Source of the DNA: Paramoeba atlantica | Taxonomy: Eukaryota; Protista; Discosea | NCBI GenBank assembly: GCA_977017575.1 | Contig: CDRNVI010000038.1 | Coordinates: forward strand, 62,001 to 126,000 | Reading direction: 5' to 3' | DNA: 64,000 bases | Shown: positions 1 through 41,199 of the stretch, piece after piece | Position numbering within the stretch: position 1 is the stretch's first letter | How the letters are laid out: the number at the start of each line of letters is the position of its first letter | Notes under the pieces: generated by a model | Database searches by the model: none | Told to the model about the DNA's origin: nothing | The model's input: the letters and a program-made list of their open reading frames with translations, nothing else | Translations under genes and position numbers: made by a program

Positions 1-228
1 GGGAGCCTCTCCGGCGATCTTGGCGGCTCTTTTTGCCCAGTGTTTGGGGATATGTTTGGGAATCGGTGTTGTGTACAAGAGTTCATCGTAGGAGCTCTGA
101 CCGGGAATTAAATGTGCGTTTCCTGCAAATTGGTCCCAAGCACCCGTGTTGTGCGAAATTTCTTCCTGACGGAAAGAGTCGTCGTCCATGGGTACTGCAT
201 TCGCATCGAAGAGGTCGTCGTGTGGCAT
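1..228 (-). CDS. Unknown ORF (5' part, runs off window) downstream of an SL-like sequence
   Basis: ATG at 228, 76 open codons to the window edge (MPHDDLFDANAVPM...), 44 nt after the SL-like 3' end; no recognisable motif. Confidence 0.4.
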   Translation of the reverse strand, partial: MPHDDLFDANAVPMDDDSFRQEEISHNTGAWDQFAGNAHLIPGQSSYDELLYTTPIPKHIPKHWAKRAAKIAGEAP

Positions 229-272
229 GGTGAGACCCTGCTAGGGAAAATAGTGGGTTAATAAAAATAATT

Positions 273-309
273 CAACAAGGTACAGAAACTGTATCTTTAT
301 CGTTACTTT
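273..309 (-). other. Spliced-leader (mini-exon)-like exon sequence, not followed by an intron GT
   Basis: AAAGTAACGATAAAGATACAGTTTCTGTACCTTGTTG shares TAACG, TACAGTTTCTGTAC and terminal TTG with kinetoplastid/diplonemid SL exons; followed by AATT, so not an SL RNA gene. Confidence 0.8.
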
Positions 310-534
310 ATCGTTTTTTTTTTTTTTTTTTTTTTTTTTGCGTGGTCTCAGCTTTCGGTTTTCAGAAAATATCACTTTTTTTTTCAATCAATCAAAACTT
401 TCAGCTGTGTAGGTCTACGAATTGATAGAACCTAGCCATGCGGCCTTTGGTAGGCTGTCGCGTAATTGCGTGATATAGTCTCCTAAATTTCCTCTCGTAT
501 ATTTCTTTATAAGTATACTTATAAAGAAATCAAC

Positions 535-6568: not shown

Positions 6569-9500
6569 AAAACAGTCAGCGATCTGCTCAGTGATGTCAG
6601 GCGGATGTACACGCACTGCGTACTGCATCTTCACGTTTATGCTGTGGGATAATAAACTGAGCGACACATTGTTAAGCCCCATGATCTTCAGCCGACTGAA
6701 AGCTAAGTTATGTTGTTCAAGTTGGCCCGTCAGCCTCTCCGCCACCGTTGTATTCTTGCCAATGAATGCTCCCAACACCTTTGTGGCTTCATTTTCGTTG
6801 ATGACTCCCGCATTCTCGAGACATGGCGGAATCGCAATTTGGTTCCACCCGCCGAACCATACACATTTCTTGGCAGCAAGCTCTATAGATTGTTCCCTGA
6901 CGATTTCTTGGAGTCTGCCGAATGCTTTTTCGATGTCGGAGGCATTCAGAGATGATATTGTGACGTCATCGATGTATGCGTGTAATTCCACGTTCGGAAA
7001 TTCCTGGGCCAGCGTCTCTAAAATGGGTTGCATATAGATACAAAAATAAAGAGAAGCTAACGGCGATCCCTGCCTGAGTCCCGACGAACTTGGCACGACT
7101 CCAAACAATTTGTTTTCCGATCCGTAGAATAGAAGTTCAGAGGTGCCAGAGTATTCGACCTGGAAGAATCTTTGAAATGGTCGCAACGCGCTAAAGGCGA
7201 AAACGTGCTTTGCTATTTCTTTCCTGCATGGAGAATTAAACGCATTTTTAAAATCAATTGCGAGCATCGAATGACCTTTATTGTAACGCTCACGAAGTTT
7301 GTGGACTATTCGTTCGCATCCAGCCCAAGCAAATACTCCCTGTTGCATTGGAGTGAAGAGTGGTGCCAGAGTGTGTTCATACCGTTGCATGAGTACTATT
7401 CCAGCCAGTTTGTTGAGAACCTCGCCCATTGCTACGGGACGCACTCCTCTGCCCCCCTTCGGTATGGCGACCAGCCGAGCCCGGTTTAGACGCTGAGTTA
7501 CATCCTTCGAGAGAAAGCCGTTTAGAAGATCGCATATCATGTGACACAAGCTTCCGCAGGACACCTCGTCATCGGTCATGAGGCGCACAATACCGTCGGT
7601 CATTCCCGTAGGCCCGGGGCTGACTCCTTTCGCCAGCCTTTTGGCAGCGCTACGTAGCTCTTCAGGTGTGACCCCAGCCAAGGTGGGCGCGTCTTCGGGT
7701 GCCTCAAAGTCACATGGTTTTTGAGGATGCAACTCTGTTAACTTGTCCAAAACCTCCTCGTCGGACAAATTGATTGATTTAAACTTTTGACTCAATGTTT
7801 TTGCCGCTTTAGACGCGCACCCTTCCAAAACTAGTCTCTTTGCTTTGTTAATGGCACGTAAATCCTGGGCAGCATCGCTGTCAACCGTCGCCTTCGGAGT
7901 GAAAGGTTTACGTCTTTTGCTGCGTTTATCCACATCTCGTATTGTCGCCAATGATAGTTTCATCGCTGACAATAGCCGATGCCAAATCTGGTTTCGTTGC
8001 GCAAAATCGACATTTGCGTAGTTCCGTATAATATCCCGCAGTGTGGCGACGACGCACGGAATAAATTCTGGACTCACCGTTCGCATGGTTGGGATCGGGA
8101 GATGATCAATTCCCTCGTTTCCGCAAGTCAAATGCTCCGCTAGTTGATGATTTTCCATGAAAGAGTCTCGCCGTACGGTCTCGTCTATCGAGGGAGGGGC
8201 CTGGTGCCATAATATACGATAAACTCTTACGGCTTCTTGTGGCGGAAGCGTTCCTTTGAATTCGTCGCCGACGCTGTACCCACGAACTCCTTGATACAAC
8301 ATAGATAATTTCCCCAGACCTCCACGTTTGCTGTGTGTCCGTGTGACTTTCCCGATCGATACGTTGATCTCGTCGTTGCGATCGAATGTCCACACAATGG
8401 TGCATTTTGTTCCCGCTTTGATCTGTTTAGATTGCTTCCATATCTCGTCCCCTGGTATCGGAAATTGGGTTTTAATATTGGTGGTTCCTTCCAAGCTCTC
8501 TGCCCATGCTTCGTCTATATGCCTCATATCTTCCTCCGCTCCATTTTCTCCGATAAATCGAATTCGCTGCTGCGGAACACTCTTCTCGGCATTTGCTGGC
8601 TCACCGTGTACTATGTTGCTGATCCTTGCCAGCTCGGTCAAACGTATTCCGTCTCCCGTGTTGTCGTCAATCAAGTTTGTTGGAGTTGTCAGTCTGGCAT
8701 TTTCAATATTTCCTTGCACGTGATTAGTGGTTTCGTTCCCTATCTGCCTCACGTCGATCTGCTTAAGCAGGTCTTGTGGAGATTCGCAGTCGTGGTAGAC
8801 AATGTCCTCTCGCGATGTGATTTCGTCATCCCCCGAGGTTGTACCGCTGATCTTGGTGGGAGTAATCTCGCTAATTTTCTGCGGCGTTGCTCCCTTAGTT
8901 AGTCGCGTCACGTGGTCGTCCTTTCTTGCGTTGATATCACTTTTCCGGATGTTCTTGGGAGATTCCTCGTTCTTCTGATGTGTTGTGTGTGCCTCTGTAT
9001 TCCTTCCGATTCTTGCCAAAATCTCCTCATTAACTAAGTTGAGCTTCGGTCTGCGCTTCGGACGGTTCAGAAACTTTGGCTTTCGTGGGGCAGTATTGAT
9101 CTCCCCTTCTATGTCTCTTACTCGGTTTTCTTCTGCTCGACTGTCTGGGGTCCGATTATTGCAGTTTTTGTTACTTCCTGGCGTTGTTGCTCCTGGCCTT
9201 GTTCCGCACATCTTTCCTTCCTCGTCCCTCTCTCGGTCCTTTCTCGATCCCACGTCGTCCGCAGTCGTCGCATTTCGTGTGGCCCGATTTCGGCTGAAGT
9301 TGATCAATTCGCGCGTAGATGATACGATTTTAATTTTTCTGGGTACTGGCAATGGCAGTGGCAACTGGTTATCCACTTTGGACTTTGAGTTTTCTTCCGT
9401 GGAAAGCGTCGCAAGCGGATGGCGACTCGGTGATTGTGACAAAGGCAGCGCGGCTGGAGGGGGAGAAGGCGCGGCGGGAGGAGAAGGCGGCGCTAAGGGG

Positions 9501-9820
9501 GGAGTAGAAGGTGGCGCGGCGGGAGGAGGGGAAGTCGATCGCGTCGTAGGGAACGACAGCGCGCGCGGCAGAGGAGGAGGCGACATTGGGAGCGGCAGCG
9601 CTGGAGGTGGTGATGGCGCACGCAGCGGAGTAGGAGGAGGTGACGGTAGAGGAATTGACGGCTCGCGCGGCGGCGGTGGAGGCGACGTCGGTGGAGGAGA
9701 AGCGTCCGACGATGGCGCCAGCCCTAAAGGGTATTTTTTCTTCCGGCGGGTCGGCGGCAGCGGCTGGACAACGGGGGCTACTCCCGTCTCCTTCGCGCGG
9801 CTCCGGGTGAACATGCCCAT
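6569..9820 (-). CDS. Family A1 N-terminal part: Pro-rich region, beta-rich domain, reverse transcriptase
   Basis: GPTG, RPVAMGE, IDFKNAFNS, GLRQGSPL, YIDD, LGAFIG. Confidence 0.92.
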
Positions 9821-10420
9821 GAAGGGTGAGAGAATAAGAAAAGGAAAATTTTTTTTTTTTTGTGTTAAGATTTCTGTACCTTGTTGAATTTTTCTACTTG
9901 GTCTTACAGAAAACGATGGTCTTTTTTATGGATGTCTAAGGAGACACGTGAGAGATTCACCGGAATTTGGGATCTATTAATATTAAAATTCTTTTCGTAA
10001 ACTCTTATAATATACTCGTCTAAATTTCATCACGTAAACTAATAATAATTATAATTAAACCTCCATGTACTTCTGTGCTCGAGACTAAGCTCTTGCTCAA
10101 CATGAATCGGACAATATTGATATTTCCTCTTAGGAATACCCCATCTTCAATCTTCGAAAGAGACACTTGTGATTGTATTTCAAGAAGGCATTAGTAAGTA
10201 AACTTATAATCATTGCACGTTTCGGACCGGGTCTTTCGAGAAAAAAAAACCTGATCCTACCTACCTCACGTTGGGGAACCTCACTCGAAAGAGCAAGGCG
10301 TGAGAGTAAGCACTGTCGGCACGATCAACTCCCGTAACGACCACATTTCGGAGGCACAGGTCGTAAAGTAAAAGGCATAAGATGGGAGTGCTGTCGGAGA
10401 GTCGAGAAAACCGACTACAT

Positions 10421-12808
10421 TCAGAGTCTGAGGCCTCCTAGCCACTTTTCGCCCTTGATGTGATTTCGCAGCTGCGACACGATTGTGTATGCTGCGAACT
10501 TTTCGTTTTCCAATTGGAAGGCTTCCCGTATCACTTTGGGGTCTAAGTCAGCGCGTTTCGAGAGGGCTTTAATCAGCTCCTTCGTATTTTCGTGCAGCAT
10601 TCCACAATCAGTTAGCGCTATGCATCGAAAATAGTTTGGATCCACTCCTTTCTCCACTATGTATTTTCGATGTTTTCTTTCTATGGAACTCTCTAGAAGG
10701 GCTGTGCTGGACTGTTTCTGGTAGCTGCTGCAGAGTGTGTGTACGACTGTGACATCGTAGAGGACTTCTCCAATATCTGGCCACATTATGGCCAGATCGG
10801 GGCCCGAACGTATACGACGAGCTCTGCATGGGTGTCTCTCCGCTGCTTCTGGTGAAATAGAGCACTTACACTTCGTGCAAAAGAACGATGAATACAGACG
10901 CGGTTCCACCGCACATGGGAGTCCAGCTTTTCCACATAGATTTGAAAGGTATCGAACAATGTGTGAGTGTTTTCTCGTACAGTTCATCCCAGCACATTTC
11001 GAGCAACCTGCAACGTGTGGAAATATTCCGGAGGGCGATTCACTGACCCCGCATCCAGGACAGGAGATATTACTCGAAGAAGGGAGACTGACGGCCAGCC
11101 TCATCTTGAGCGTTTGCTGGAAGAGGTACGGGTTTACGTAGTTGTTGGTCGAGAGGAGATGAAAATTTGCTTCCTTCGAGCGCTTCATAACTCCACTGAA
11201 ACGTGGTTTTGTTTTCAGCTCTGCCGCAAGTTTTTCGTGCTCGTCGTTGACTAGTTTCTTCAGTGCCGTGCGTACTCCTTGTGTCCCTGTGGTCTTGTTG
11301 CCTTTTTGTTGCTTCTCAGAGTTTTCTATCGGAGCTTCATATGGGTTGAAATGCTCATCAATAGATTGACGGGAAGCTTCAAAAAGATAGCGATGTTTCA
11401 GAACTGTGGAGGTTATTCCCAATCCTCCCATTTTGCACGGCAAAGAGGCAAGTGCTAAGGCATCTTCGTCAGCATCGCACCACTTTCTTAAGACTTTTTG
11501 GATCTCTTTGTCAAAAGTCTGAGCTAGAAGGAATGATGCGCCCGGTTTATGTACTCGCAGGTGATAATCGTGGCGCGGTATCGTGCAACGCTTTAAAATT
11601 GCGAGGGAAAGATTACTTGGCCCCATGCGGCTGAGTCTTCGAAACAGACAGTTATGCTTCTCCAATTTTTCGAGAAGTTTGCGTTCTACGGCTTTGTTGT
11701 TGCCTAGGTATCCTCCGAGCACTTTGATTGTATCTACGCAGTCTTGAACCCCAAGTTCCCGAAGAGAGGAATCTTTGATGTGTAATGCCCTGGATCCTTG
11801 AAAGATTTCGCATTTGCGGTAGTTTATTTCTAAGTTCAGATCGCTCGTAAGCTCTTTGAAATGCAAGAATGCAACCTCGAGAGATGCCTCGTTTTTAGAA
11901 CTCATCGTTACATCATCCTGGTACGCGCGTACGGTGACCTCGGGGTAAGCATCAGCTACTTCTTTCAAAGCTCCATGCAACACAGCGCAGAAATAAAGCG
12001 ATGACAGCGCGGATCCTTGCCAAACCCCAGAGGAGCTCTCTATGACTGAATGCAGCGAGTTGTTAGCAAAGAAGAGAAGTTCGGTTGGCTGGCCATATTC
12101 TAAATAAAAAATCCGCATGAAATGTTTGAAGATGGGATATTGAGTTAGAGCTCTTTCTATTGCTGTTCGATGAGGTGTATTATACGCGTTTTTGAAGTCA
12201 ATGGTGAGCACCGTATTTCCAGCTTCATACTCAGAAAGTAACTCGTGTACAATTGATTCACAGGCATTCTTCTGCAAGATCCCTCGCTGGATAGGTTGGA
12301 AGAGCGATTTTAGCGCAGCCTCATGACGCTGAAGAAGAATTGTGCCACATATTTTAATTATGGTATCCCCCATCGCTACAGGTCTTACGCCGTTGTTCGG
12401 TTTGGCTAGAGCAATGATTCTGCAACGAGTCAGACGTTTGCGTACACTGTGAGCGATTTCCCCGTTGATTACGTCGCGGAACATATGACACAAGGCGAGT
12501 CATGATTCTTCGTCTTCTGCTAAGAGCCGCATCATACATTCGCTAAAACCAGTGGGTCCGGGAGATGCTCCTCGGGATAATTTTGCTGTCGCTAGGCGCA
12601 ATTCGGAGCATTCGACCACTGCAATTCTCGGTAGCTCTTGGTCCGTCCCTTGAGGTGAGGGTCCGTTTGGGTGAAGTGATTTTAGTGCCTGAGCTTTTTC
12701 TTCTGCCGTGAGAGGTGAATCTCGATACACGTTGTCTAGTATTCGCGTTGCTTTGCTTAGATTTCCTGCTCGTCCCGCTTGCAAAGCGTTGCTAATAGAA
12801 CGGCGGTC
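10421..12808 (-). pseudogene. Family B1 RT-RLE with one in-frame TGA (12500-12502)
   Basis: RPVAMGD, YQDD, GGLG, CPGC, GPD; EES*LALC versus EESCLAIC in B2. Confidence 0.85.
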
Positions 12809-13939
12809 GGGTAGGGGGGACCTTCGATGAAGCTTCATCGAAAGTGTACAACTTTCGATGAAGCACATTGAAAGTTGTACACTTTCGATGAATCTTCATC
12901 GAAGGTGTTTTTGACTTTTTTTTTTTCAAATCTTCACGCAAACGTTTTTCGCGGATCCATATAGACATTTTGACTTTTTTGGTGCTCCATCGAAGTGTTT
13001 TGTGAAGGCTCGTAGAGGAATTTCACCGTTTCTTCAGTTTATCTTCATCGAAGCGTTTTTGACTGATCCATATACATATTTTGAGCGACAATCCTGCGGA
13101 AGGGGTAAACACAGGATTTTCGTTGAGTACTCAACGAAGTGCCGGATTTTCGTTGAGTACTCAACGAACGGAAATTCACGGTGGAAATCAAGGACTTTTG
13201 CATAAGTCAAGGACTTTTGTGGAACATCCAAGAATTTTTTTTTGATTTTCATTTTCCGTGCGTTCAGTATCCTACACTTCGCTATATACGTTGACAACGC
13301 CTGCGTAGCGAAAACTACGAAATTCAGTGAGCTTCGCAAATTGCTTCCCACTAACGACGCACAGGGGAACCCTACGCGGGGTACGGCTCAGGCCCGCTCA
13401 CGCGGGCCCTCGCCGTTTCGCGGCCGCGCGCACCCCCGCTCACGCGGGGGCCCCCGCGCGGCCAAAATGGGTACTAAAATTTGTTATCAAGGTAGTTGGG
13501 CTTCGCAAATTGCTTCCCACGAATGGATACTAAAATTTGTTATCAAGGTAGTTGGTCAAGATTATCAAGATTATCAAGTAGTTATCAGTTAGGCCTTTCT
13601 TCCTCCTCCCTCTAAGGTCCTGCAGATTTTTTACGGTCACAGGGTACGTTCGTTGAGAAATCAACGAACGTACCCCCAAGCCAAAATGTGAAAGAAAACG
13701 GAAAGTCAGAATTCAGACAAAAAAACAAAAAATTATTGAATTTAAAATGAAATTATATGTTTCATGCAACGTGTTTTCAACAGCCAATGGAAAAATTCGT
13801 TCAAAAACAAAAAGTTAAAAAAGTCAAAAAAAGTCAAAAACACCTTCGATGAAGATTCATCGAAAGTGTACAACTTTCGATGTGCTTCATCGAAAGTGTA
13901 CAACTTTCGATGAAGATTCATCGAAGGTCCCCCCTAGCC
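12809..13939. mobile_element. Non-autonomous TIR element (MITE), GG termini, 8-bp TSD, Merlin-like
   Basis: TSD CGGCGGTC at 12801-12808 and 13940-13947; ends GG(G/C)TAGGGGGGACCTTCG; about 110-bp TIRs; no transposase ORF. Confidence 0.85.
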
Positions 13940-14904
13940 CGGCGGTCCATGTCTAATTCTAAGCGGTCATGCTCGCTCAGTTTTGAGTCATCTTCCTCCA
14001 TCCAGTTCTTGCGGGATTTTCTAACTGAGCTCTGACGTCGGATTAAGTTCTGATGTACTGTTGCTAAAGAATCCCTGGGAGAATTTAAAAGTTTGTGCCA
14101 GATAGCGGATTTCTCTGATTCTGTCTTGGCTTTCGGATAAGCACCAATAATCGAGCGAAAAATTGCAACAACGTGTACTGAGAACGAAGAATCAATTAGC
14201 GAAAATCTGGGGAGGGGATCTAGGTCGCACCCATCGTCCGCTGTCTCAAAGCTTTCATTCAGGTCTGAGTTCTTCTCTTCTACGGATTCAACGGAGGGAG
14301 TCTTGATTTTGTTAATCTTCACTTCGTTAATCGACCAAATTTTGATCTTCGCGGATTGCGGAAGGTGAAGAAGACCAGCGGGTCCTTCGCTACCCTCTTT
14401 AGGTTTGTATGCAATCGTGAGCTTCACTAAACCTCGACGCACCGTTCTCTTGGACACCGCACCTTCACTGGTATATGTCTCTTTCTCATTGAATCCCCAT
14501 CGTATTTCGCACGTGCTACCCTTTCCCCAGTCCTTTATGATGTCGAGAACGCGATCCGGCGCCTTGGGAAACCTTCCGCTCGTTGCTAGCTGGTCACCGT
14601 CCGTGGACATCGTATCTGAGGTATCGCTGCCAAAGCTGTCTCGTGAATCGGCATCTGAGCTTACATTCGACGTGCAATCTATTGGAGACAAATATATTTC
14701 GGCATCATCGCGTGCTCTGGCCTTGATTCGTTCTCGAGGTGGAAAGTCGTACGCTCCATGGTCTGCCCATGATTTCGAAAGTTCCTTCTCACTCGTCACT
14801 ATTCTGATTCGCGGAATCTTCTTGGGATTGGATTGTAAGCTATTCTTCCGATCAGGGTGTGAAAAGTTCACCCCTGGGAGAGTGTTGCCGTGGGGGGTGG
14901 ACAT
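13940..14904 (-). CDS. Family B1 N-terminal ORF part
   Basis: Continues in frame into 12808 after MITE removal; homologous to 29761-30219 and to the B2 N-terminus. Confidence 0.8.
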
Positions 14905-14930
14905 AATTGTAAGAGTAAGAAAACAACAAG

Positions 14931-14970
14931 CAACAAGGTACAGAAAAGAAAAGAAAACAAGGTACAGAAA
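14931..14970 (-). repeat. Two SL 3'-half relics (TTTCTGTACCTTGTT[G])
   Basis: Copies at 14931-14946 and 14956-14970 match the SL 3' end. Confidence 0.8.
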
Positions 14971-15013
14971 AGAAACTCGCGAAATGCAAAAGTTTTTGTT
15001 GAATTATAACGTT

Positions 15014-18000
15014 TTTTTTTTTTTTTTTTAAAGTAATAATTTATAATTCTCAGAAATCAAAATTTCCATTGTACAATTCTTTTCGTAAACTTTTAATAGA
15101 TAAATAGATAATTTAAGTTTTCTGGTTTGTTGATTTTTTTGTTGAAGCTTACGCGTCTTTGTAAGCTTATGTATTAAATATATAATTTTACTAAAGTATT
15201 AATCTGTTTGACTCAAAAACCATAATTTTCTGTTCCATTCGACGCTAAGTATTTGCGGAGTTGCGAGTATACAGCAGCTCCGTTGAGGTCCTGTAATAGA
15301 AGTTTAAAGTCGGCCTCTACGGTTTTTCTATTTTGCACTGTTGCGTCGGCCAAAGCGTAGAGGAGATTTCTTGTTGTTGTGCTCAGTCCTCCGCTGGATA
15401 AAACTGGTAGGCACTGAAATGCTCCTGATGAAATTAGTCCGCTTGCGACATAATGTCCATGTTTTCGTTCTGTGGCTTCCTTCATTAGTTTCGAGCAATT
15501 AGAGTTGATGTGCGACGGAGAAAGGTCATGGACAACGGTAAGGTCGTAGAAAATTTCCCCGCTGGCCCAGTAAATCAAGAGATCAGGTCCTGATCGATGG
15601 AAAGTTCGTCCAGCACATGTTCTTTGATGAATGACCTTGTTCTCGTAGTTAACATTTGCGTTGCATGCTTGACACGTCCACATGGTGAAGGCCCGAGGTT
15701 CGATCTCACATGGAATTCCAGCCCGAATACATAGGTCACCAATGTACTTGACAAGAGCGTTGTGTTTTACGGTTGCGTTGAGTCCGGAGCATCGGACACA
15801 TCCAGGGATGTGGGTGAGGGCCGTGTTGCCGTCTAATATAATCTTGCACCCGGGGCAGGTGAGGTTTCGAGGTAATTTGGGATGGACAATTCCAAGTCGC
15901 GGCATGATCGTAAGTTCAAAGTTCCGTGGAGGTACGAGTCTGGTGTTTGACATGAGCCAGTCGTTATTGCCTTTGTATGAGGTAACTTTGAGAATGGCGG
16001 CAAGCTTTGGTTCGTGCATGAGTTTTTCCCAAGTTTTATTGTGCAGCTTAACAGTTTCTGTTATATCGTCTTCGGGAGGTCGTAGTACCGTCATTTTTCT
16101 TTCGTGTATGAGATGTTCGGCTTGTGTCGTAGTCTTCTTCATTGTGTGAGCTCGAGCAGAAAAGGAATTTTGGCGCTCTTGAGCTGCATACTTTGAAGAA
16201 GTGTGTGCGGCTTCTCGTAGTGGATGCGTGGCGGTTAATCCTAGCCCTCCTTTCTTAACTGGCAATCGCGCGATTTCAACCTGTTGATTCTGTAAAGGTC
16301 CTAACCAATGTGTCAAAACCCCTTCAATTTCTTTGTCAAACTGCGATGTGAGAGCATCTGTGGTACTTGGGTGTTGAACTCTCATCAGATACTGCTGTCG
16401 TACATTAACACAACGCGTCAGTATATTAAGTGAGACGTTGCTGAGGCCCATTTTCTTAAGCCGTCGGAAGATGTCATCGTGTTTTTGCAACTTTTTGAGT
16501 AATTGTTCACTAATGGTTTCATCTTCTCCAACATAAGCACCTAGGATCTTCGTAACAGTTGTCTCCTCTGCAAGACCGAGCGATGATAGTTTGGCGGGTA
16601 TCGCATGTCGTGTTTGTCCTCCAAACCACACGCACTTTTGCAGTGAGAAGTTCAATTGACGTTCCGACATTAAAGCTTGCAGTCGTATAAAGGCTTTTTC
16701 TAATTGGTCTGGATCCGTTGATACGAGCGTTATGTCATCGATGAACGCAGAGATTTCAATGGTCGGGAACTCCATTGACAGCGTTTCCAATATCGGCTGC
16801 AAGAATGCGCAGAAATATAGAGTAGCCAATGGTGAACCTTGGCGTACCCCGGCAGTGCTAGAAACGATACCTTCCAATTTGCCTCCATGTCCGTAGTACA
16901 GCATTTCAGATGCCTCAGAATATTCCATAGCAAAGAAACGCTGAAAGGGGCGGAGGGTGCTCATTCCGAATACGTGTTTCGCTATGTCATCTCGACTGGG
17001 TGAATTGAATGCGTTCTTTATATCGACCGTTAAGATGCAATGTCCACTTGTGTATTTTTCATGTAGCTTGTGAACGATTTTTTCGCAGCCAGCTTTGGAT
17101 AATATGCCTTACTGCATTGGCTCGAATAGACATCCTAAGGTGGCTTCGTAGCGTTGCAGTAATGTAATCCCAGCTAGCTTTCCAAGAACTTCACCCATCG
17201 CGACTGGCCTGACGCCTCCATCCGGTTTCGGAATTGCCACTAGACGAGCGCGATTAATTCGTGTTCGGACTTCTTTAGAGACAAATCCGTTTATCAAGTC
17301 CGCGATCATATGACACAAGTTTAGACAACACACTTCATCGTCCAATAGGATTCGAATTATACCATCTGTTGTTCCCGTCGGACCGGGGCTAACGCCTTTC
17401 GCTAGTCTTCTGCCTGCTTCTCGAAGTTCATTAGTGGATATTCCCACAATAATGGGAGCGTCATTGGGGACTGTAAAAGTGCAGGCTTTCTGTGGATGAA
17501 GGAGCTCTAGTTTTCCTAACGTTTCTTGATTGGTCAAGGTGTTTGGTTTGAACTTTCTGTCCAGTACTTTCGCAGCCTTTGACACGCAGCCTTCAAGGAC
17601 CAGTTTCGTCGCTCGCTTGATGGCGCGTGTGTCGTCAGTCGTGTTCGTATTTTCTGAACTCGTTTCATTCGTTTCCGGCAATGGTCTCCGTCGTCTTTGT
17701 CGCTCACTCATTTGTCGTACGTTCGCTAGTGAGAGTTTCATAGCTGACAGGATTCTATGCCATATCTGATTGCGCTGATCGTAGTTGCTGTCTCCGTAAT
17801 CGCGTACTATGTTGCGGTATGTTGCCGTCACGCACGGTATTATTTCAGGGGTGAGAGTGCGCGCTGTGGGTATGGGTTGAAAATCAGTATCTTCATCCGA
17901 CCAAAATGTGTTTATTTCCCCCATTGGATGATGCAACATTTCGAGTTCACTGTTCTTCGGTTCAATGCCATCAATGGGAGGCGGAGCACGATGCCAGAGA

Positions 18001-18409
18001 ATTTTATAGATTCTTACACTTTCTTGGCTCGGCAACGATCCAGAGAATTCTTCTCCAACTTGATGTCCGTGCACTCCGGTGTACTGTATGAACAATTTTC
18101 GAGTTCCTTTTCGAGAATACGTTCTTGTGACCTTTCCGAGCGCGATGTTCATTTCTTCCTGCCTGTCAAACGCCCACGCTACAGTACAGATCGTTCCTGT
18201 TTTTATGTCTTGTAGATGTCTTTGGATTTCATCTGGTGGAATCGGAAATTGAGAAACAGGGTCAGTCGTTGTCAGTATTTTGTTTATCTCTTCTGTGCTA
18301 TAGCCGATGTTGTCTCCAACGTAGCTGATTCCTCGTGAATTTCCGTCATTCGACGTAATTGAAACATACGCATTGGAAATTTCTTGCGCTGTGGATGGAG
18401 TGTGGATCG
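15014..18409 (-). mobile_element. CRE-like element family C, 5'-truncated
   Basis: Poly(A) at about 15014-15029; TSD ATTATAACGTT at 15003-15013 and 18410-18420. Confidence 0.87.
15213..18409 (-). pseudogene. Family C RT-RLE ORF with one in-frame TAA (17109-17111)
   Basis: RPVAMGE, GVRQGSPL, FIDD, GGLG, GPD; PMQ*GIL versus PMQQGVF in family A. Confidence 0.85.
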
Positions 18410-18778
18410 ATTATAACGTTATAACGCTTTAGAGCGTTGTTGTTTCTGAATTTAAAAGAGATACCTATTTACATTCAGAAATATTTAAATTCGTAAACAG
18501 GTATATTCATCAAATTTAGCATTTCAGAAACACCAACAAAACAAAATCGTTGATTTTTTACATATAAAAAATCCTTTTATGAATAAAATATCTTTTTCAT
18601 ATGAATACGATCTCCATGCGAAGCGATCGAAACATGTTAGAACCCAATAAGTAAAACCTATAAATTTACGATTTTGTATGTTGGAGATAATACATCCTTA
18701 CACTAAATGGTAAGATTTTCTTGATAAAGAAACTCGCGAAATGCAAAAGTTTTTGTTGAATTATAACGTTATAACGCT

Positions 18779-21676
18779 TTAGAGCGTTGTTGTTTCTGAA
18801 TTTAAAAGAGATACATGGCCATGCCTGTCGCTCTCGTTCCCATGGCGTGAGGGTTCATCTGCTATGTTTTTCTCGGAGCAAATCCAACGGACCTCCTTGA
18901 GATAACCAGGTAGGAAAAACACGTGGTATAACCGGCGTAGCCACTCCATAATTAGCGGGGGTCCTGCCTTCCATTTGGACAGCCATGCCACAACGTTCTT
19001 ATTATCTGATATCAGTGTACAAGCCTTGATTTTTCTTTCCTTTACCAGTTTTAAGCCCATCTCTGCTGCGAATAGCTCCTTATATGCAATAGGCTTATCT
19101 CTGAGCCAGGCCGCAAAATTTCCAGAGCGATACTGAAGACTTCCGCCCTGCAGCCATGCTAGTCCCCACCCCTTCTCGGAAGCATCACAATACAATTCAA
19201 AGGTACTGGTTTCTCCCCTCTCCAATTTTCTAGGGGTGTTTGCCTCCACTCTATCGATTAGCGTAATAAGGCTCGAGATGAATTTCTGGGACATCTGGCA
19301 TGGTAAATCCCATAAGACTGGCTTAGCTGCCAATCTGCGTGCTCTCCCCTTCAGCCAATACATCACAGTTGGAAATTCGCACTGAGTAATACCTAACACT
19401 CTAGTTGCCCAGAACAGGGTCCCCAACACTTTCCAGATTAGTCGGTGCGTCGGCAAGCGATGCTGTTGCGCTAGTAACTTGAATGCCTCGCGTAAGTGTT
19501 TTAATTTATCAATAAACTGAACCGGCAGTGAGAGTTTCTTTTCCTCTAGATTTACCTCAATGCCTAATACTGTGCCCTTACTGGTGGGCTTCGTGGTGAC
19601 CGCAATTTCGGCGCCAACCTGCTTCGCACGTTGCAAAGTTTGGCTCAGGTCATCCTCTACATCCTCCTGGCTGGTTCCAAAACGGTAACAATTGTCAATA
19701 AAAGTCAGTGGATGTGAATTACTAACCGGAAGGTTGTGGATCAAGCTTGTAGCCGCATGACCAATTTTTACCGAAGAATGCCATCCCATGGGCAATGTGG
19801 CCCAACCATATGTCCTTCCCTTAATGCGAACGGCCAAGTAGGGCAGAACATCTTCTGGAAGCCCAAACTGATGGTACCAATTTCTTCCATCCGTCTCCCC
19901 GAAGAATTTGTTTTCCAGGACCGCCTTTTCAATATCCTGCAAGCTCGCTAACGTTAAAGGTCCTGGGACTATAGATTGTATCTCGTTGAGAGGAATCGCA
20001 TTCAAGATCACACGCATGGTTTTCTTCTTCGGCTTGGGAATCAAAAATGCTGTCATCCATATTTTTGCGGTTCTCCGTGGGATTCTCTTTATTACCCCGG
20101 ACCTCACCATCTCCTCCACGAAAGGTTCCAGCCTCTTCGATTCACCGCGATAACGAGGATCGTAATCCTTCCTCAACAAGCCCTTAAACTTATTCGCGTC
20201 CTGCACGAAACCGAATATTTTCTTTTCTTCTCTCACATCGCTTCCAGTTTTCAGTAGAAGTAGTTCTTCTACATTTACCCGTTTTACATCAATCGGATCG
20301 ATTGGCCAGTTCTCTTTTCTGGGATGGTTTCTCTCTCCAAAAAACGTCCTGCGCATAAAACTCGCATAGGTATAGGATACAAAATCACAGAGTATCCTCC
20401 AAGGAGAGGTGCCGGCACCGACAGGTGCGGCGACGCCAGCTCGCCCGTGGTGCTGAGCCGCGTTTAATGAGGACTCTTCCTGAGCCCTATTCCCATACCC
20501 GCGTGGCATGAGTAATCGCCCGGGTTCCTTCCCGGCGCCCTGAATCATGTCGTCCGATTTACCTTGTTTGGTATCCTCCATGTGGGACTTTTTCTTCCCC
20601 ACAATATTTCTGCGTCTCAGGGGTCTTTTCTTCCCTTCTTTTGTCGCTTCCACGCCTATGCTCGTGCGATGGGAAACATTCTCACCTAAACTCTTAAATT
20701 TCTTGGGAAAATCATCCTTACCTGGGTAAATAGATAGACTGGTCTCATCACGTGCTTTACCAGTACCATCTCCCGGAAATGTTTCACTAGGTGATTTTCC
20801 AGAATCGTCTCGAACAGAAACTCTAATAAGGCCCGTTCCATAATTTCCTTGGCTCGGTATGTGTCGAGAACGCCTACCTTGAATCCCTTTCCTACTGGAG
20901 CTGTTTCCTTTTGAGGGCTGAGTCTTACGCGAAAGCGGAGGCCGGACTTTAAGGTTATGCGACCTCGGTACGGTTTCTCTTTCCGAGGCGAGCTTCGTGC
21001 ATTTTCTTTCGTAGAAAAGGGCCCGCGGGAGAGTTTGATCTTTCTCGAGGCGCCTTAATTCCATGTGCCCCCTTTTAAGCCCCCTTGGAGGTGGATTTTC
21101 CTGCGCGTATCTCCTTCGCACTCGAGCGCGCCGGCGGTTCTTCCCATCTCTCCTCGCGATGACGTTAGCCTCGTGAAACCTCATCATTTCACGCTGAGCC
21201 TGAAGATATTTCCCCTCGAGGGTATCAGCTCTAAGAGCCTCCTTCCAGTAGTCGCCAAATTTCCGACCCATTCTGTGTTTTATTCGCAAATAATGTATCA
21301 CCTCCATAGATGGTTCAATCGAACGCATCGTGATAAACAAACCCGCCCTCGCACGAGAACAGCAATCAGCTAGGTGAGCTGCAATGGTATCAAGCGCCAG
21401 ATCTAGACTTACGATATCTCTCGATACTGATGAGGGATCTGCAGAGTGCCCGAAACACTTTCGCACCTCGTGCCTAAGCTTTCCAATAAGATTCTTTCTA
21501 TAAAGATCACTGCAAAAATGTTCGAACTTCCAATTTTGCGGCTTGAGGAGGATATCGGTCGACAGGTCGTGACAACTAGGGTCATAACTTCCGAATAACT
21601 TTTTTGGTGAGCTCACCCCTGAAACTCGCAATCCAACTCCTGAGATTTCTCCTTCACCATTAGTGTAGCACGCCAT
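18779..21676 (-). CDS. YR3 gag-linker-RT-RNase H single ORF
   Basis: N-terminus aligns to YR4 gag (HFCSDLY..NLIG); TDG..WYHQF, LPMGW, FIDN, CDAS..GWG, KELFAAE, ISDN, NIAD.PSR. Confidence 0.88.
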   Translation of the reverse strand: MACYTNGEGEISGVGLRVSGVSSPKKLFGSYDPSCHDLSTDILLKPQNWKFEHFCSDLYRKNLIGKLRHEVRKCFGHSADPSSVSRDIVSLDLALDTIAAHLADCCSRARAGLFITMRSIEPSMEVIHYLRIKHRMGRKFGDYWKEALRADTLEGKYLQAQREMMRFHEANVIARRDGKNRRRARVRRRYAQENPPPRGLKRGHMELRRLEKDQTLPRALFYERKCTKLASERETVPRSHNLKVRPPLSRKTQPSKGNSSSRKGIQGRRSRHIPSQGNYGTGLIRVSVRDDSGKSPSETFPGDGTGKARDETSLSIYPGKDDFPKKFKSLGENVSHRTSIGVEATKEGKKRPLRRRNIVGKKKSHMEDTKQGKSDDMIQGAGKEPGRLLMPRGYGNRAQEESSLNAAQHHGRAGVAAPVGAGTSPWRILCDFVSYTYASFMRRTFFGERNHPRKENWPIDPIDVKRVNVEELLLLKTGSDVREEKKIFGFVQDANKFKGLLRKDYDPRYRGESKRLEPFVEEMVRSGVIKRIPRRTAKIWMTAFLIPKPKKKTMRVILNAIPLNEIQSIVPGPLTLASLQDIEKAVLENKFFGETDGRNWYHQFGLPEDVLPYLAVRIKGRTYGWATLPMGWHSSVKIGHAATSLIHNLPVSNSHPLTFIDNCYRFGTSQEDVEDDLSQTLQRAKQVGAEIAVTTKPTSKGTVLGIEVNLEEKKLSLPVQFIDKLKHLREAFKLLAQQHRLPTHRLIWKVLGTLFWATRVLGITQCEFPTVMYWLKGRARRLAAKPVLWDLPCQMSQKFISSLITLIDRVEANTPRKLERGETSTFELYCDASEKGWGLAWLQGGSLQYRSGNFAAWLRDKPIAYKELFAAEMGLKLVKERKIKACTLISDNKNVVAWLSKWKAGPPLIMEWLRRLYHVFFLPGYLKEVRWICSEKNIADEPSRHGNESDRHGHVSLLNSETTTL

Positions 21677-21927
21677 GGGCACGGGGGCTGACCCTCGGAC
21701 GGTTCGATGAAAAGACGGTACTCTAGGAGTTTCGAGAACAGGACGATGTGTTGTTGTTTCTGAATTTAAAAGAGATACCTATTTACATTCAGAAATATTT
21801 AAATTCGTAAACAGGTATATTCATCAAATTTAGCATTTCAGAAACACCAACAAAACAAAATCGTTGATTTTTTACATATAAAAAATCCTTTTATGAATAA
21901 AATATCTTTTTTTTTTTTTTTTTTTTT

Positions 21928-21980
21928 GCCATATTCCAAATAAAAAATCCGCATGAAATGTTTGAAGATGGGATATTGAA
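21928..21980 (-). mobile_element. About 52-bp fragment of the family B1 RT region
   Basis: Near-identical to about 12091-12143. Confidence 0.75.
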
Positions 21981-21984
21981 AACT

Positions 21985-22078
21985 TCCGCGAAAAACGTTT
22001 GCGTGAAGATTTGAAAAAATAAAATAAAAAAGGTCAAAAACACCTTCGATGAAGCTTCATCGAAGGTCCCCACTACCC
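21985..22078. mobile_element. Terminal fragment of the same MITE family
   Basis: Reverse complement of about 12809-12955 but with one palindromic unit instead of three. Confidence 0.8.
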
Positions 22079-25000
22079 AACATCATCTGGTATTTTTATC
22101 TTATGTGCCGTCATTACTGTTTTTTTTGTGTTATCTTGTGTGCTTTTGGCCCGATTTCCGGAGTAACTTCAAAGATTCAGCATTGTAGACTTCCTACCCA
22201 ATGTTCTTGGGCCATATATATAAACTTTTACAACTTGATAAAATTGATAACCATTGCACATACTCAGTTTCACTTTTTATCTATCTTTATCACCAATGTC
22301 TGTCCTAAGATGTTGCAACGTCTTGAGATTAAAACCAAATCATCATCTGGCATTTTAGCTTATGTGCCGTCATCACTGTTTTTTTGTGTGTTATCTTGTG
22401 TGCTTTTGGCACGATTTCCGGAGCAACTTCAAAGATTCAGCATTGCAGACTTCCTACCCAATGTTCTTGGGCCATATATTGCCGCAGTTGCGAGAAGATA
22501 GTGTATGCGGAGAATTTTTCAATTTCCAATTGGAATGCTTCTCGAGTGTTTTCTACGTCTAGGCCTGCCCTATTTGCCAGTGTCTTGAGGAGTTCCTTAG
22601 TTTCCTTGTGAAGAAGACCACAATCTGTTACTAGTATGCAGCGAAAGTATTCTTGGTCCAATCCTTTTTCCTGCACATATTTCCGTTGCTTACGGTCTAC
22701 CGCATTTTGGAGGAGGGCAACGCTTGTCTGCCGCTTGTAGCTCCCACAACAAGTGTGCACCACTGTCACATCGTAGAGTATCTCCCCAACATTTGGCCAC
22801 ATTATGGCCAGATCAGGGCCTGAACGAATTCTCCGAGCACGACAAGGATGATGTTCTGCAGCTTCAGGTGAAATGGAACATTTGCACTTCGTGCAGAAGA
22901 AGGAAGAATGAAGGCGTGGTTCTATAGCGCAGGGTACTCCAGCTTTGGCACAAAGATCGGAAAGGTAGCGCACGATGTGGGAGTGCTTTCTCGTACAGTT
23001 CATCCCTGCACATCTTGAACACCCAGCTACATGTGAAATGATTCCATGTGGTGTTTCCGTGGCGCCGCATCCTGGACAAGTAATTTCATTCGGCGCACCT
23101 TGGAGTGCGATACCAAGCCGCATCATGAGTGTATATCGGAAGAGATACGGATTCACGTAATTATTTGTCGCTGCCAAGTGGAGATTTGCTTCTTTTGATC
23201 GCTTCATAATGCCCGCAAATCTATCCTTTTGCATCAGTTCTGAAGCCAGTGTTTCATGTTCTAACTTAATCTGCTTTTTGAAATCAGTACGTGCAGCTTG
23301 GCTGGAAATTTTCTTGTGGTTGGCACCTTTCCGCTCTCCCGTGATATCTACTGGAGCGTTAGTGGGTTTAAGTTGCTCATCAATAGATTTACGGGAAATC
23401 GCAAAAAGATAGCGTTGCTTCAATATCGTCGATGTTATGCCTAAGCCGCCCATCTTACATGGTAGAGAAGCTAGTCGGAGGGCTTCATCATCTGCATTGC
23501 ACCATCGTCTCAACACTTTGTGGATTTCTTTATCAAATACCTCAGCGAGGGAAAACGTTGCCTCTGGAACGTGCACTCTAAGATGATAATCGTGACGTGG
23601 AAGAGTACACCGACGCAGGATTGCTAGCGACAGGTTACTTGGCCCCATCACCCGTAGACGACGAAAAAGGCATTCATGTTTACTCAGCTTTTCAATCAGT
23701 TTATGTTCCACAACTTTCGCACTTCCTATGTATCCACCTAACACTTTGATGGACTGTTCGCATGTTGTGACGCCAAGCTCCTTGAGGTTGGTTTTATTTA
23801 ATACTTCGTTTGTGTTTCGGAACCACTCGCATTTTCCGTAGTTTATATGTAAATTCAAATCCTGGGTAAGTTCACGTAAATGATGAAAAGCTGCCTCCAG
23901 TGACTTTACATTCTTTGAGCTCATTGTAACGTCGTCTTGGTACGCTCGAATTTTTACTTCGGGATAATTTTTGGAGACCTCCTTCAACGGTTGTTGCAGG
24001 AGAGAGCAAAAATAGAGCGATGAAAGTGCTGATCCCTGTCTTACTCCTGAAGAACTTTCTATAATCGAGTGTAATGCATTATTGGCGAAGAAAAGGAGTT
24101 CGGAAGGCTGGCCATATTCTAGATAAAAAAGCCGCATGAAGTGTTTAAAGATCGGCTCCTTAAGCAGTGATTTCGCTATTTCCGTACGATGTGGCGTATT
24201 ATAAGCATTCTTGAAATCAACTGTGAGTATAGTGTATCCGTCTTTTCGTTCCTCTAACAACTCATGCACTATTGACTCACAGGCTCTTTCTTGTAGAATA
24301 CCCCGTTGGATTGGCTGGAAAAGGGTTTTGAGGGAGCTTTCGTGTCTGTTTAAGAGAATCGAACCGCATATTTTTAGAATTGTGTCGCCCATTGCAACTG
24401 GTCGTATGCCGTTTTGCGGCTTTGCTAGAGCAATTATTCTGCAGCGTGTCAGTCGTTTACGTACGCTTTCTGCCACATCACCATTTATGACGTCACGAAA
24501 CATGTGGCAAATCGCTAGGCAGGATTCCTCATCTTCCACTAAAAGTCGCATCATGCTTTCGCTGAAGCCTGTTGGTCCCGGCGCTGCTCCTCGAGATAGT
24601 TTTTCTGTTGCCACCCGAAGCTCTGATTGCTCAACTACCCCAATTCGTGGAAAATCTTCTTCTAAACGTTTGGGAGTGGGTCCTGTAGGATGGAGCTTTT
24701 CAACTTGAAAACTTTCTCTTGCGGTTCTAGAGATGACTCTCGGTATACATTGTCCAAAATCCGTGTTGCTTTACTCAAATTTCCTGCTTTTGCTGCTGTC
24801 AGTGCGTTTCTTATTGACCGCTGATCGATTGCAAGTTCTTGGCGTTGTTCTTCACTCAGATTTTGGTCATCTAAGAGCTCGCGGTGTCTACGGCGGTGGG
24901 ATGAACTCTGTTTTCTTTTCAAAGTGAGACGAACTGTGGCCAGCGAATCCCTTGGAGCATCCAGTAATTTGTGCCATATGGCAGTTTTCTCTGATTCTAA

Positions 25001-25137
25001 AATGGTTTTAGGGTAGTCTCGTACAATGGATCGGAAGATGGCTACTACATGAACTGCAAATGATGGATCGATTTGAACGAATGTCGGTAGAGGTTCATAG
25101 TCTTGGTTATTCTCGGCGCTTTCTTCTTCTTCTTCGT
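22079..25137 (-). mobile_element. CRE-like element family B copy 2 (divergent), 5' part cut by A2
   Basis: ORF about 25125 to 22437 with a 1-nt deletion near 24695; YQDD, GPD; 139-bp 3' duplication at 22081-22219 and 22341-22479. Confidence 0.85.
22437..24614 (-). CDS. Family B2 RT-RLE
   Basis: GPTG, RPVAMGD, GVRQGSAL, YQDD, GGLG, CPGC, GPD. Confidence 0.88.
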   Translation of the reverse strand: MATEKLSRGAAPGPTGFSESMMRLLVEDEESCLAICHMFRDVINGDVAESVRKRLTRCRIIALAKPQNGIRPVAMGDTILKICGSILLNRHESSLKTLFQPIQRGILQERACESIVHELLEERKDGYTILTVDFKNAYNTPHRTEIAKSLLKEPIFKHFMRLFYLEYGQPSELLFFANNALHSIIESSSGVRQGSALSSLYFCSLLQQPLKEVSKNYPEVKIRAYQDDVTMSSKNVKSLEAAFHHLRELTQDLNLHINYGKCEWFRNTNEVLNKTNLKELGVTTCEQSIKVLGGYIGSAKVVEHKLIEKLSKHECLFRRLRVMGPSNLSLAILRRCTLPRHDYHLRVHVPEATFSLAEVFDKEIHKVLRRWCNADDEALRLASLPCKMGGLGITSTILKQRYLFAISRKSIDEQLKPTNAPVDITGERKGANHKKISSQAARTDFKKQIKLEHETLASELMQKDRFAGIMKRSKEANLHLAATNNYVNPYLFRYTLMMRLGIALQGAPNEITCPGCGATETPHGIISHVAGCSRCAGMNCTRKHSHIVRYLSDLCAKAGVPCAIEPRLHSSFFCTKCKCSISPEAAEHHPCRARRIRSGPDLAIMWPNVGEILYDVTVVHTCCGSYKRQTSVALLQNAVDRKQRKYVQEKGLDQEYFRCILVTDCGLLHKETKELLKTLANRAGLDVENTREAFQLEIEKFSAYTIFSQLRQYMAQEHWVGSLQC

Positions 25138-29760: not shown

Positions 29761-30269
29761 GGCGAAACATGGGTTGCTCTTGTTTTCTTCACCGTCTGTC
29801 GACATAGAATCTGATTGTGTCGCTTTTTCGTCTTCGGACTTTGAGGCGTTCGATTCATCATTTTCCGAAGTTTCTATATCGATATTTCCTCGTTCAATTC
29901 TGTTTCGCATCGTGTATCTCTTCAACTTGATGAGATTCGAATTCTTCGCTTCCACTTGATCATGAATTTCGTGGTCAGCCCAAATTGGAGAAATGTCTTT
30001 TCCTGTGCTTTGACTGATAACCCTAATTCGTGGTGTCTTCTTGGGTTTCGGTGCGGTCTCACTTTTATTGTAGCTCGGCTCGGTGATTCTGGTGTTCGGA
30101 GAAGCGCTACAGCGTCCTTCGCTACAATCATCCTTCCGGGTAGCTTGCAGAAAATTTCCCGATGTCGCCCCGATGTCGTCCGTGAAGTGTTTTCCAAATC
30201 TCGCTTGACGAGCGAACATGTTTAAGTAATCTCAATTAAAAAAAAACAACAAGCAACAAGGTACAGAAA
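29761..30269 (-). mobile_element. 5' end of a family-B-like element with SL relic (30254-30269); ORF from 30219
   Basis: KTPRIRV, WADH and MSTDG shared with the B1 N-terminus; possibly the 5' end of B2 with a deletion at the A2 site. Confidence 0.72.
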
Positions 30270-41171: not shown

Positions 41172-41199
41172 TTAATAAAATTTAATAAAAAGAGTCAAC

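Follow-up and report, generated by a model that had tools for sequence, protein, structure and literature searches.

The 64,000-nt stretch of DNA analyzed here, referred to as the window, is part of contig CDRNVI010000038.1 (positions 62,001 to 126,000, forward strand) of assembly GCA_977017575.1, filed under Paramoeba atlantica. It is a nest of CRE-like retrotransposons of the non-LTR class (LTR, long terminal repeat) on one strand, almost all minus, and the subject of this text is the pieces of a spliced leader (SL) found at the 5′ ends of such elements. At the 5′ end of one of them, B1, the minus strand from 14981 to 14902 reads, in order, GAGTTTCT(TT), TTTCTGTACCTTGTTT, TCTTTTCT, TTTCTGTACCTTGTTG, CTTGTTG, TTTTCTTACTCTTACAATT and ATG, with a 24-nt periodic structure. 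The parts of B1 and its target are the following.

14971-15011, minus strand: target of B1, a piece of the terminal repeat of a tyrosine recombinase (YR) element, identical to 18770-18728 by sequence comparison
14955-14970, minus strand: outer SL fragment, TTTCTGTACCTTGTTT, 14-16 nt of SL nt 24-39, its first two T being common to the target
14947-14954, minus strand: 8-nt spacer between the two SL fragments, TCTTTTCT
14931-14946, minus strand: inner, exact 16-mer, matching SL nt 24-39
14924-14930, minus strand: second CTTGTTG, repeating the last 7 nt of the SL
14902-14923, minus strand: AG-free, pyrimidine-rich leader with the start codon (14904-14902)
10202-14904, minus strand: body of B1, with N-terminal region, reverse transcriptase (RT), CCHC finger and putative restriction-enzyme-like endonuclease, interrupted at 12801-13939

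Twelve further loci (L001-L012) of the same ENA assembly were fetched through protein searches and contig look-ups, and 283.7 kb were scanned overall. The sampled genome is repeat-rich and several of the lineages are related, so the counts given below are not fully independent. The fetched loci are from the same species, with A4, one B1 copy and one B2 copy being 98.8, 99.1, and 99.4% identical to the window, respectively. The genome is of kinetoplastid or diplonemid type and the host was read as euglenozoan.

B1 is located 44 nt beyond another element, C, in the same YR repeat, and its uninterrupted target, ...GAGTTTCTTT continued by (A/G)TCAAG, was found both at a contig loose end at 14969 and in the copy at 18770-18721. 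A sequence-only reading of the window had given B1 two SL ends of 16 nt and had placed another at 30254-30269; the latter and the inner B1 fragment stand, whereas the outer fragment is 14-16 nt long, with a 2-nt microhomology to the target. A second CTTGTTG right behind the 16-mer was confirmed in both places, and such extra pieces also occur at L007:9022-9029 and at L001(-)14618-14624. The 8-nt spacer of B1 resembles a short leader piece and is compatible with a template jump. No more B1 5′ ends were obtained from the fetched loci, the sole other B1-like N-terminal protein (P0040, L009) being from a 5′-truncated copy.

Spliced Leader Sequence and Copies

The 16-mer TTTCTGTACCTTGTTG occurs exactly at 273-288(-), 9871-9886(+), 14931-14946(-), and 30254-30269(-) of the window, and with one mismatch at 14955-14970(-). 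These five occurrences compare with 0.04 expected, and at least five were reached in none of 100 shuffles. The 16-mer is the final part (nt 24-39) of a 38-39-nt SL of euglenozoan type, (A)ATCTTTAACGATAAAGATACAG followed by TTTCTGTACCTTGTTG. One such SL, TAACGATAAAGATACAGTTTCTGTACCTTGTTG, lies at 273-305(-) and ends in the 16-mer; seen against it, the 16-mer begins exactly after the last internal AG, as had been claimed. The SL contains CAGTTTCTGTAC, the kinetoplastid SL core, and the literature matches listed nearly all concern trypanosomatids.

The sequence (A)ATCTTTAACGATAAAGATACAGTTTCTGTACCTTGTTG was found 17 times at a length of 31-39 nt, with two mismatches overall. All 17 of these near-full SLs stand 22-45 nt upstream of the ATG of a retroelement open reading frame (ORF), in ∼13 families, and the junction between SL and leader is family-specific across them. 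The leaders are T-rich and directly adjoin the SL, and the upstream flanks are mutually unrelated or poly(A) runs in 15 of the 17. Neither GT nor an intron follows any SL end in the 283.7 kb; for this reason, and given such flanks, the near-full SLs are not SL RNA genes. Their existence also speaks against the 16-mer being an intrinsic part of the element leader unrelated to a real SL.

An 8-mer, AATTATTT, stands between the SL end and otherwise differing leaders in at least five families (window 265-272(-), L004:2447, L005:19099, L006:9964, L009:447, L010:6742, and L010:12108). At L010:12108 the order is SL, AATTATTT and TCTTTTCTTTATC, and in the sister family at L009:5078 it is SL and TCTTTTCTTTATC. 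The 8-mer could stem from use of another acceptor site, or the SL could have a longer isoform.

Probable Copying from SL-Capped, Polyadenylated RNA

Self-comparison of the window revealed a 4.6-kb element, A, in three copies (A1, A2, and A3) with 99.7% identity. The elements and fragments that bear on the origin of the SL pieces are listed here.

273-339, minus strand: head of a family E element, with SL at 273-305, partial 5′ SL duplicate CGATAAAG at 306-313 and A26 run at 314-339; ATG at 228
376-1658: A1, 3′ part, split from the 5′ part by a YR element
6569-9848, minus strand: A1, 5′ part, without SL relic, beginning TTTTCC right after an A13 run (9849-9861)
9871-9886, plus strand: 16-mer (sequence match) heading a short fragment with an E-like leader (AATTTTTC...)
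15012-18409, minus strand: element C, a 5′-truncated CRE-like copy with an A18 tail and the target-site duplication (TSD) CGTTATAAT
21907-25135, minus strand: B2, 3′ part, beyond the A2 insertion, with an A21 tail at 21907-21927
25136-29760, minus strand: A2, inside B2, with 304 bp of target lost; SL relic CCTTGTTG at 29753-29760
29762-30269, minus strand: B2, 5′ part (beta form), with the 16-mer at 30254-30269, CTTGTTG at 30247-30253, leader at 30220-30246 and ATG at 30219
41196-41201, minus strand: TTGTTG immediately preceding the leader of an N-terminal A-like fragment (ATG 41171)
41623-46956, minus strand: A3, with SL relic CTTGTTG at 46950-46956 and a poly(A) site 36 nt downstream of that of A2
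54068-54083, minus strand: TTTG(TTG)4 immediately preceding the leader of another N-terminal A-like fragment (ATG 54044), with an AG just upstream

The relics of A2 and A3 immediately precede the leader TCTTTTTTCCTTTTC, and A1 starts 4 nt inside this shared leader. Both relics are thus present as described (8 and 7 nt), although the eighth base of A2 may be chance, and the two copies may have inherited one 7-mer from a single source. That the A and B1 leaders contain no AG was confirmed from the sequence. The relics of 4-6 nt that had also been reported (41196-41201 and (TTG)5 at 54068-54083) are by themselves indistinguishable from chance because TTGTTG is so frequent, with 286 occurrences in the sample, 186 of them without further SL match; they are credible by position only. 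At 54068-54083 the SL end is expanded as a microsatellite. The segment at 30254-30269 belongs neither to a further B1 copy nor to a fragment of a separate family; it is the 5′ part of B2, split by A2. Both window parts of B2 match a single continuous L007 copy with 99% identity, and the 5′ 508 bp (29762-30269) are 99.4% identical to L007:9006-9513.

Full SLs were found at the same junctions as these fragments. In A4 (L001:9490-9525), TCTTTTTTCC is immediately preceded by a full SL; at this position A2 retains 8 nt, A3 retains 7 nt and A1 nothing. In B2-alpha (L004(-)22713 onward) a full SL is joined to TTGAATATTTATTGAGATTAC, whereas B2-beta (window and L007) has the 16-mer, (C)CTTGTTG, T9 and (A)ATTGAGATTAC, the window copy reading 16-mer, CTTGTTG, T9AATTGAGATTACTTAAAC and ATG. 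The three B2 copies are 97-99% identical downstream, and the alpha and beta forms are 97% identical despite a full SL in the one and a 16-mer plus 7/8-mer in the other. Sister families likewise carry tags of 38 nt (P0009) and 16 nt (P0008 and P0010).

The targets are not SL sequences. On either side of element C, 9 bp of a non-SL target, CGTTATAAT, are duplicated (15003-15011 and 18410-18418). At L007:9004-15034, an insert that includes a B2 copy and begins AA plus TTTCTGTACC... interrupts the RT gene of another element, whose uninterrupted paralog is at L004:1-1016, and AATAAAT (7 bp) is duplicated on both sides. Neither insertion at a fixed position inside SL RNA genes nor copies in an SL array with SL-derived TSDs were found in the 283.7 kb, the targets being the YR repeat (B1 and C), the RT gene (L007), and B2 (A2). 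Since full SLs occupy the same SL-leader junction as the fragments and the targets are non-SL sequences with TSDs, the SL arrives with the RNA; and since the SL is near-invariant while the proteins of different families are ∼30-70% identical where compared, it has probably been acquired afresh repeatedly.

These insertions also bear on the proposal that the element endonuclease cuts between AG and TTTCTG, by which the 16-mer would be target DNA, either a TSD or a split genomic SL. The elements descend from SL-gene-specific relatives, and an inverted 5′-truncated element abuts an SL relic at two places (30270 onward and 46957 onward). However, the 16-mer in L007 is the terminus of the insert itself, bounded by the 7-bp duplication in an RT gene without SL, and the YR repeat targeted by B1 contains no SL either. 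The 16-mer is absent from every 3′ end examined, where a TSD would place it, and SL nt 1-23 never stand alone at an element end, save for short duplicates that immediately precede a full SL. Contradicted by the L007 insert, the targets of B1 and C, and the 3′ ends, the reading of the 16-mer as a cut site or TSD was rejected as highly improbable.

The 3′ ends resemble those of mRNAs. The poly(A) tails are A9 in A1, A-rich in A2, A16 in A3, A18 in C, and A21 in the window copy of B2. Within one 3′ untranslated region (UTR), the poly(A) site differs among A1 (376-384), A2 (25136-25164), and A3 (41623-41638), and these variable sites of family A are mRNA-like 3′ ends. The longest version of the A 3′ UTR is common to the element at 60524-62898 (3′ end 60475-60505). 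A template-jump origin of the 36 nt and poly(A) in A3 was rejected, as they are the normal 3′ UTR continuation seen at 60475-60505.

Copying of the elements from mature, SL-capped, polyadenylated mRNA, which the sequence-only reading had proposed, is well supported by the full SLs at the same junctions, the family-specific junctions, the near-invariant SL, and the three poly(A) sites of family A; trans-splicing is the probable route of SL attachment. The templates would be mature mRNAs trans-spliced to the SL (38-39 nt as a DNA copy) and polyadenylated at variable sites. Target-primed reverse transcription would read them up to the SL or partly into it, so that new copies would carry a near-full SL (31-39 nt) or a 5′-truncated one. 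The fragments at 14921-14970, 30247-30269, 29753-29760, and 46950-46956 would then be truncated SL tags, inherited wherever a truncated copy turned source (the two B2-beta copies; A2 and A3). Taken together with ends set by the structure of the SL, discussed below, this explanation is considered probable with good confidence.

Alternatively, source copies could sit at the exon-intron border of an SL RNA gene and be transcribed from the SL promoter as a single SL-element RNA. Elements of the CRE clade insert at one fixed position of the SL RNA gene (PMC12278014), no source copy with AG before the leader was found in the sample, and the near-full SLs at L004(-)19791 and L008(-)12823 have a common upstream flank, a high-copy repeat. 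The other 15 flanks, however, are the unrelated or poly(A) ones, the 283.7 kb contain no SL intron, and related families differ by 8 nt at the SL-leader junction (L009:5078 vs L010:12108), as alternative acceptors would give. Transcription from within an SL RNA gene is therefore unlikely.

The common flank itself, CTAGAGAGAAGCACACGTACAAT, was found at L004(-)19792-19814 and L008(-)12824-12846 upstream of the SL, and in three runs a contig has a loose end of identical sequence at window 13524. It is either a composite repeat amplified after insertion or a conserved region upstream of an SL.

Irregular Junctions and Poly(A) Runs

An R2-type RT can jump end to end between templates, with heterogeneity at the 5′ junction. 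Signs of irregular reverse transcription are common at the SL ends here. Full SLs are immediately preceded by partial 5′ SL duplicates at window 306-313, L005:19053, and L001:9471, and TGTACCTTG pieces form arrays at L004(-)18946-18975 and L008:20806-20828. At L010:7396-7453, an inverted duplicate follows an A11 run, with antisense SL nt 20-39 plus 13 nt of leader, then the SL and that leader again in sense orientation, as if reverse transcription had snapped back or switched strands.

A run of at least eight A lies within 16 nt upstream of nine of the 17 near-full SLs, whereas 0.7% of positions in general are so placed (P = 1e-15), and near none of the eight 16-mer starts (Fisher P = 0.048 vs near-full SLs). 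Near-full SLs may be the inner junctions of head-to-tail units, formed by A-tail insertion or by a jump from the SL 5′ end to poly(A), in which case truncated SLs may mark the outer junction with target DNA. Where an A13 run precedes the SL at L001(-)14661, untemplated or jumped sequence is indistinguishable from the tail of an upstream element with an early poly(A) site.

Tandem element-bearing units also occur in three contigs marked circular by the assembler, L002 (ctg3698c), L012 (ctg3688c), and L011 (ctg3812c). The tandem period is 5371 bp in L002 and ∼10,992 bp in L012, and each unit begins with the same truncated SL tag. These contigs may be tandem arrays or extrachromosomal circles.

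Tag Lengths and the 16-nt Class

A tabulation of 5′ junctions had been suggested as a check. Over the 283.7 kb it gave more than 20 partial tags and 17 near-full tags before element leaders, with lengths of 9-39 nt and a peak at 16 nt among the partial tags. The exact SL-suffix lengths were distributed as follows.

9 nt: 3
10 nt: 2
12 nt: 4
13 nt: 4
16 nt: 8, from B1, B2-beta, the P0008 array, P0010, and the 9871 plus-strand fragment (five lineages)
18 nt: 1 (23-24 nt with one mismatch allowed)
27 nt: 1
31-39 nt: 17

With 16 nt as the pre-specified length, five of 11 independent partial tags were of exactly this length (P = 7e-5, or 0.006 when the B superfamily is counted conservatively), and the range of 17-30 nt is nearly empty (P = 1e-5). 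The 16-nt class is real, over-represented, and starts right after the last AG of the SL.

The SL contains a palindrome, TACAG-TTT-CTGTA (nt 19-31), predicted to fold into a UACAG/CUGUA stem with a UUU loop. The first base of the loop is where the 16-mer begins, and that of the 3′ arm is where the 13-mer begins, while the starts of the 8- and 7-mers lie immediately beyond the stem. In cDNA, SL nt 2-19 are predicted to form a second fold-back of 7 bp. These positions suggest that the structure of the SL sets the favored ends (16, 13, and 7-8 nt), which would form in RNA through pausing or run-off of the RT, or at the 3′ end of the cDNA through fold-back and trimming. Splicing at the AG would then not be needed to account for the 16-mer, since this AG is merely the last two bases of the 5′ arm of the palindrome. 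Structure-dependent ends would rank first among the causes of the 16-nt end, followed by subfamily inheritance, an RNA start at T24, and re-splicing at the AG, in this order.

SL recycling, as in dinoflagellates, would mean that an SL-bearing genomic copy is spliced again at its internal AG, leaving the 16-mer under a new SL. The position and excess of the 16-nt class are what such reuse would give, and SL-tagged copies without AG at the SL-leader junction need some other acceptor; moreover, an AG stands directly upstream of the relic in two short-relic copies (L001(-)14937 and window 54084-54085), and tandem SL pieces exist (16+7, 16+8, and 36+7). However, a 16-mer follows none of the 17 near-full SLs, SL sequence precedes none of the eight 16-mers, and a scan of the 283.7 kb for an SL end plus 16-mer with up to two mismatches returned no true case. 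Near-full copying of the SL is usual within families (33/37/38, 34/38, 38/38, and 39/31), and re-spliced RNA should therefore often have left SL+16. In the tandems (16+7, 16+8, 36+7, and 13+10) the short piece is inside, 7-10 nt long and without AG, and the internal AG is preceded by purine-rich sequence, often after a poly(A) run, which makes it a poor acceptor. The reuse of the internal AG put forward earlier is thus improbable, about as much so as transcription from an SL RNA gene.

A fixed RNA 5′ end would explain the recurrence of one length differently. RNA of the B lineage would start at T24, through an internal promoter or start site inherited with the truncated tag, or an SL isoform of 16-17 nt would exist, and every full-length copy would begin with the 16-mer. 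One and the same base terminates two independent B2-beta insertions (30269; L007:9006) and the inner junction of B1, A2 and A3 likewise have one common end, and the 16-mer starts lack the A-runs found before nine of the 17 near-full SLs. A precedent is the Pr77 internal promoter of L1Tc/ingi elements, which yields unspliced transcripts from the first base of the element (PMC1874656, PMC8190864). On the other hand, B2-beta acquired its 16-mer only once it had separated from B2-alpha, outside the older 7/8-mer, and the same end point therefore arose more than once. An E-like leader (9871) carries the 16-mer too, neither a promoter nor a ribozyme was detected, with nothing from Rfam at the 5′ regions, and nothing pointed to a short SL RNA. 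A fixed RNA 5′ end is accordingly a possible but doubtful explanation.

An HDV-like or other 5′ ribozyme behind the precise 16-mer end was rejected on the Rfam result, which included no match reaching the gathering score in the window and, at E ≤ 10, only noise at the B1 and B2 5′ regions.

Several observations weigh against SL-capped mRNA templates with ends set by SL structure. Four of the five 16-nt lineages belong to superfamily B and are not fully independent; the SL hairpin is weak (-6 kcal/mol, z = -1.6); and the end base shared by the two independent B2-beta insertions and the inner B1 junction fits an RNA start at T24 equally well. The 283.7 kb contain no SL RNA gene, so that the SL is deduced from retrocopies and from its resemblance to known SLs. 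A genomic AG acceptor before the leader was found in none of the 27 copies that keep the N-terminus, and source genes for the SL-leader RNA were not seen among them; these could lie elsewhere or inside SL RNA genes. Finally, the RNA-labelled run X5 had no match on the window, and the runs X1, X2, and X4 gave contigs of undeclared type, those of X1 and X2 behaving like DNA assemblies.

A broader form of the SL-capped template explanation would make such mRNAs obligate templates and have the SL shape integration, with SL-to-poly(A) jumps building the same-strand head-to-tail arrays, the palindrome setting the 5′ ends, and successive rounds stacking SL pieces. This is speculative and rather unlikely as a whole.

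Relationship to the CRE Clade and Other Systems

ORF comparison and Pfam searches revealed divergent RT-bearing families, B1, B2, C, D, and others. Each element has one long ORF, and E-values between 1e-17 and 1e-21 were obtained for Pfam RVT_1 in A, B1, B2, C, D, and others. A C-terminal alignment of six families had invariant CPGC...H..GC..C, EPR, a second C..C...H...C, RSGPDL, YD, and K; at the level of motifs, these correspond to a CCHC finger and a restriction-enzyme-like (PD-(D/E)xK) endonuclease of the R2/CRE type. Protein searches gave no named reference sequences among the matches, and the protein atlas gave generic RT clusters. Judged by the architecture of their predicted proteins, the elements are CRE-like, and they are dispersed rather than confined to SL RNA genes.

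The single long ORF, with RT followed by CCHC and an RSGPD...YD...K endonuclease, and the poly(A) tail are as in CRE1/CRE2, SLACS, and CZAR, and the euglenozoan host and association with the SL are as in the CRE clade of trypanosomatids. Elements of that clade, however, occupy a fixed site in SL RNA genes, and their RNA begins with the first SL bases because it is transcribed from the SL gene. The copies described here are dispersed in other repeats, carry the 3′ end of the SL exon or the whole SL at their own 5′ end, and have 7-9-bp duplications of non-SL targets. The genome paper of the diplonemid D. papillatum annotates "SLACS reverse transcriptases" and SL RNA genes and is silent on SL-tagged copies (PMC10161547).

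DinoSL-tagged recycled retrogenes were reportedly described in dinoflagellates by Slamovits and Keeling in 2008. As in such retrogenes, described as "recycled" processed cDNAs (PMC6050394), a trans-spliced leader is fixed here at the genomic 5′ end of a retrocopy as a tag of passage through mRNA, and tandem pieces occur. In dinoflagellates cellular genes are tagged, and the relics are cut at the internal AG of the leader and lie downstream of a newer full leader. Here, in contrast, autonomous retrotransposons of a euglenozoan host are tagged, a full SL followed by an AG-cut relic was not seen, and the inner pieces are 7-10 nt long without AG.

L1Tc/ingi elements with Pr77 are also non-LTR elements of a trans-splicing host and have a precise common 5′ end. 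Their transcripts are unspliced and without SL, and their endonuclease is of the apurinic/apyrimidinic (APE) type, whereas the 5′ end here is SL-derived and no Pr77-like promoter was shown. The partial duplications, the inverted duplicate, and the head-to-tail poly(A)-SL junctions resemble what a jumping R2-type RT would leave. No description of SL-tagged retrotransposons in Euglenozoa was found in the literature searched.

Other Elements of the Window

The interruption of B1 is a feature of its own.

12801-13939, no strand assigned: 1139-bp high-copy element with ∼117-bp terminal inverted repeats (12808-12922 and 13826-13941) inside B1, delimited by a contig joint

It has no counterpart in other B1 copies, contigs of X1 and X2 join 12800 to 13940, and its core (13050-13800) has ∼20 times the depth of B1 in DNA-like runs; it looks like a miniature inverted-repeat transposable element (MITE)-like DNA transposon. 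The 3′ limit of B1 is uncertain, family homology extending to at least 10202. Element C sits in the split direct repeats of a YR (DIRS/VIPER-like) element, whose 54-bp repeat unit occurs twice, ∼340 bp apart (18415-18468 and 18757-18810). The minus strand carries nearly all retroelement ORFs, non-LTR and YR, apart from two short 5′-truncated plus-strand fragments (30270-30847 and 46957-47612), each of which abuts the SL-tagged 5′ end of a minus-strand element.

Family E is RT-bearing, since the related SL at L005:19061-19098 heads an ORF (19144 onward) with RVT_1. The ORF behind the full SL at 1-313 was considered as a cellular retrogene and rejected as such, being the N-terminus of another RT-bearing element family. 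Several such ORFs (window 1-313, L009:5106-7877, L010:7487-11476, and L001:14077-14517) gave weak Pfam matches to LsmAD, a domain of ataxin-2/Pbp1-type proteins, upstream of the RT. If true, an N-terminal domain linked to poly(A)-binding protein would be unusual in a retrotransposon.

Implications

CRE-type elements are textbook residents of SL RNA genes. The relatives described here have left this niche, and in more than 12 families the leader is borne by the 5′ end of the element itself, which makes mature trans-spliced, polyadenylated mRNA the probable template. Tagged copies without an acceptor AG at the leader junction pose the puzzle of where the source genes lie and how they are expressed. 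Each new copy has a datable 5′ tag, through which the reading of a non-LTR RT into a capped leader can be studied, and the tags inform on how the 5′ junction is made, a poorly understood step of target-primed reverse transcription. Should the broader form of the explanation be true, the SL would offer a natural barcode outside dinoflagellates, by which cycles of retrotransposition could be counted.

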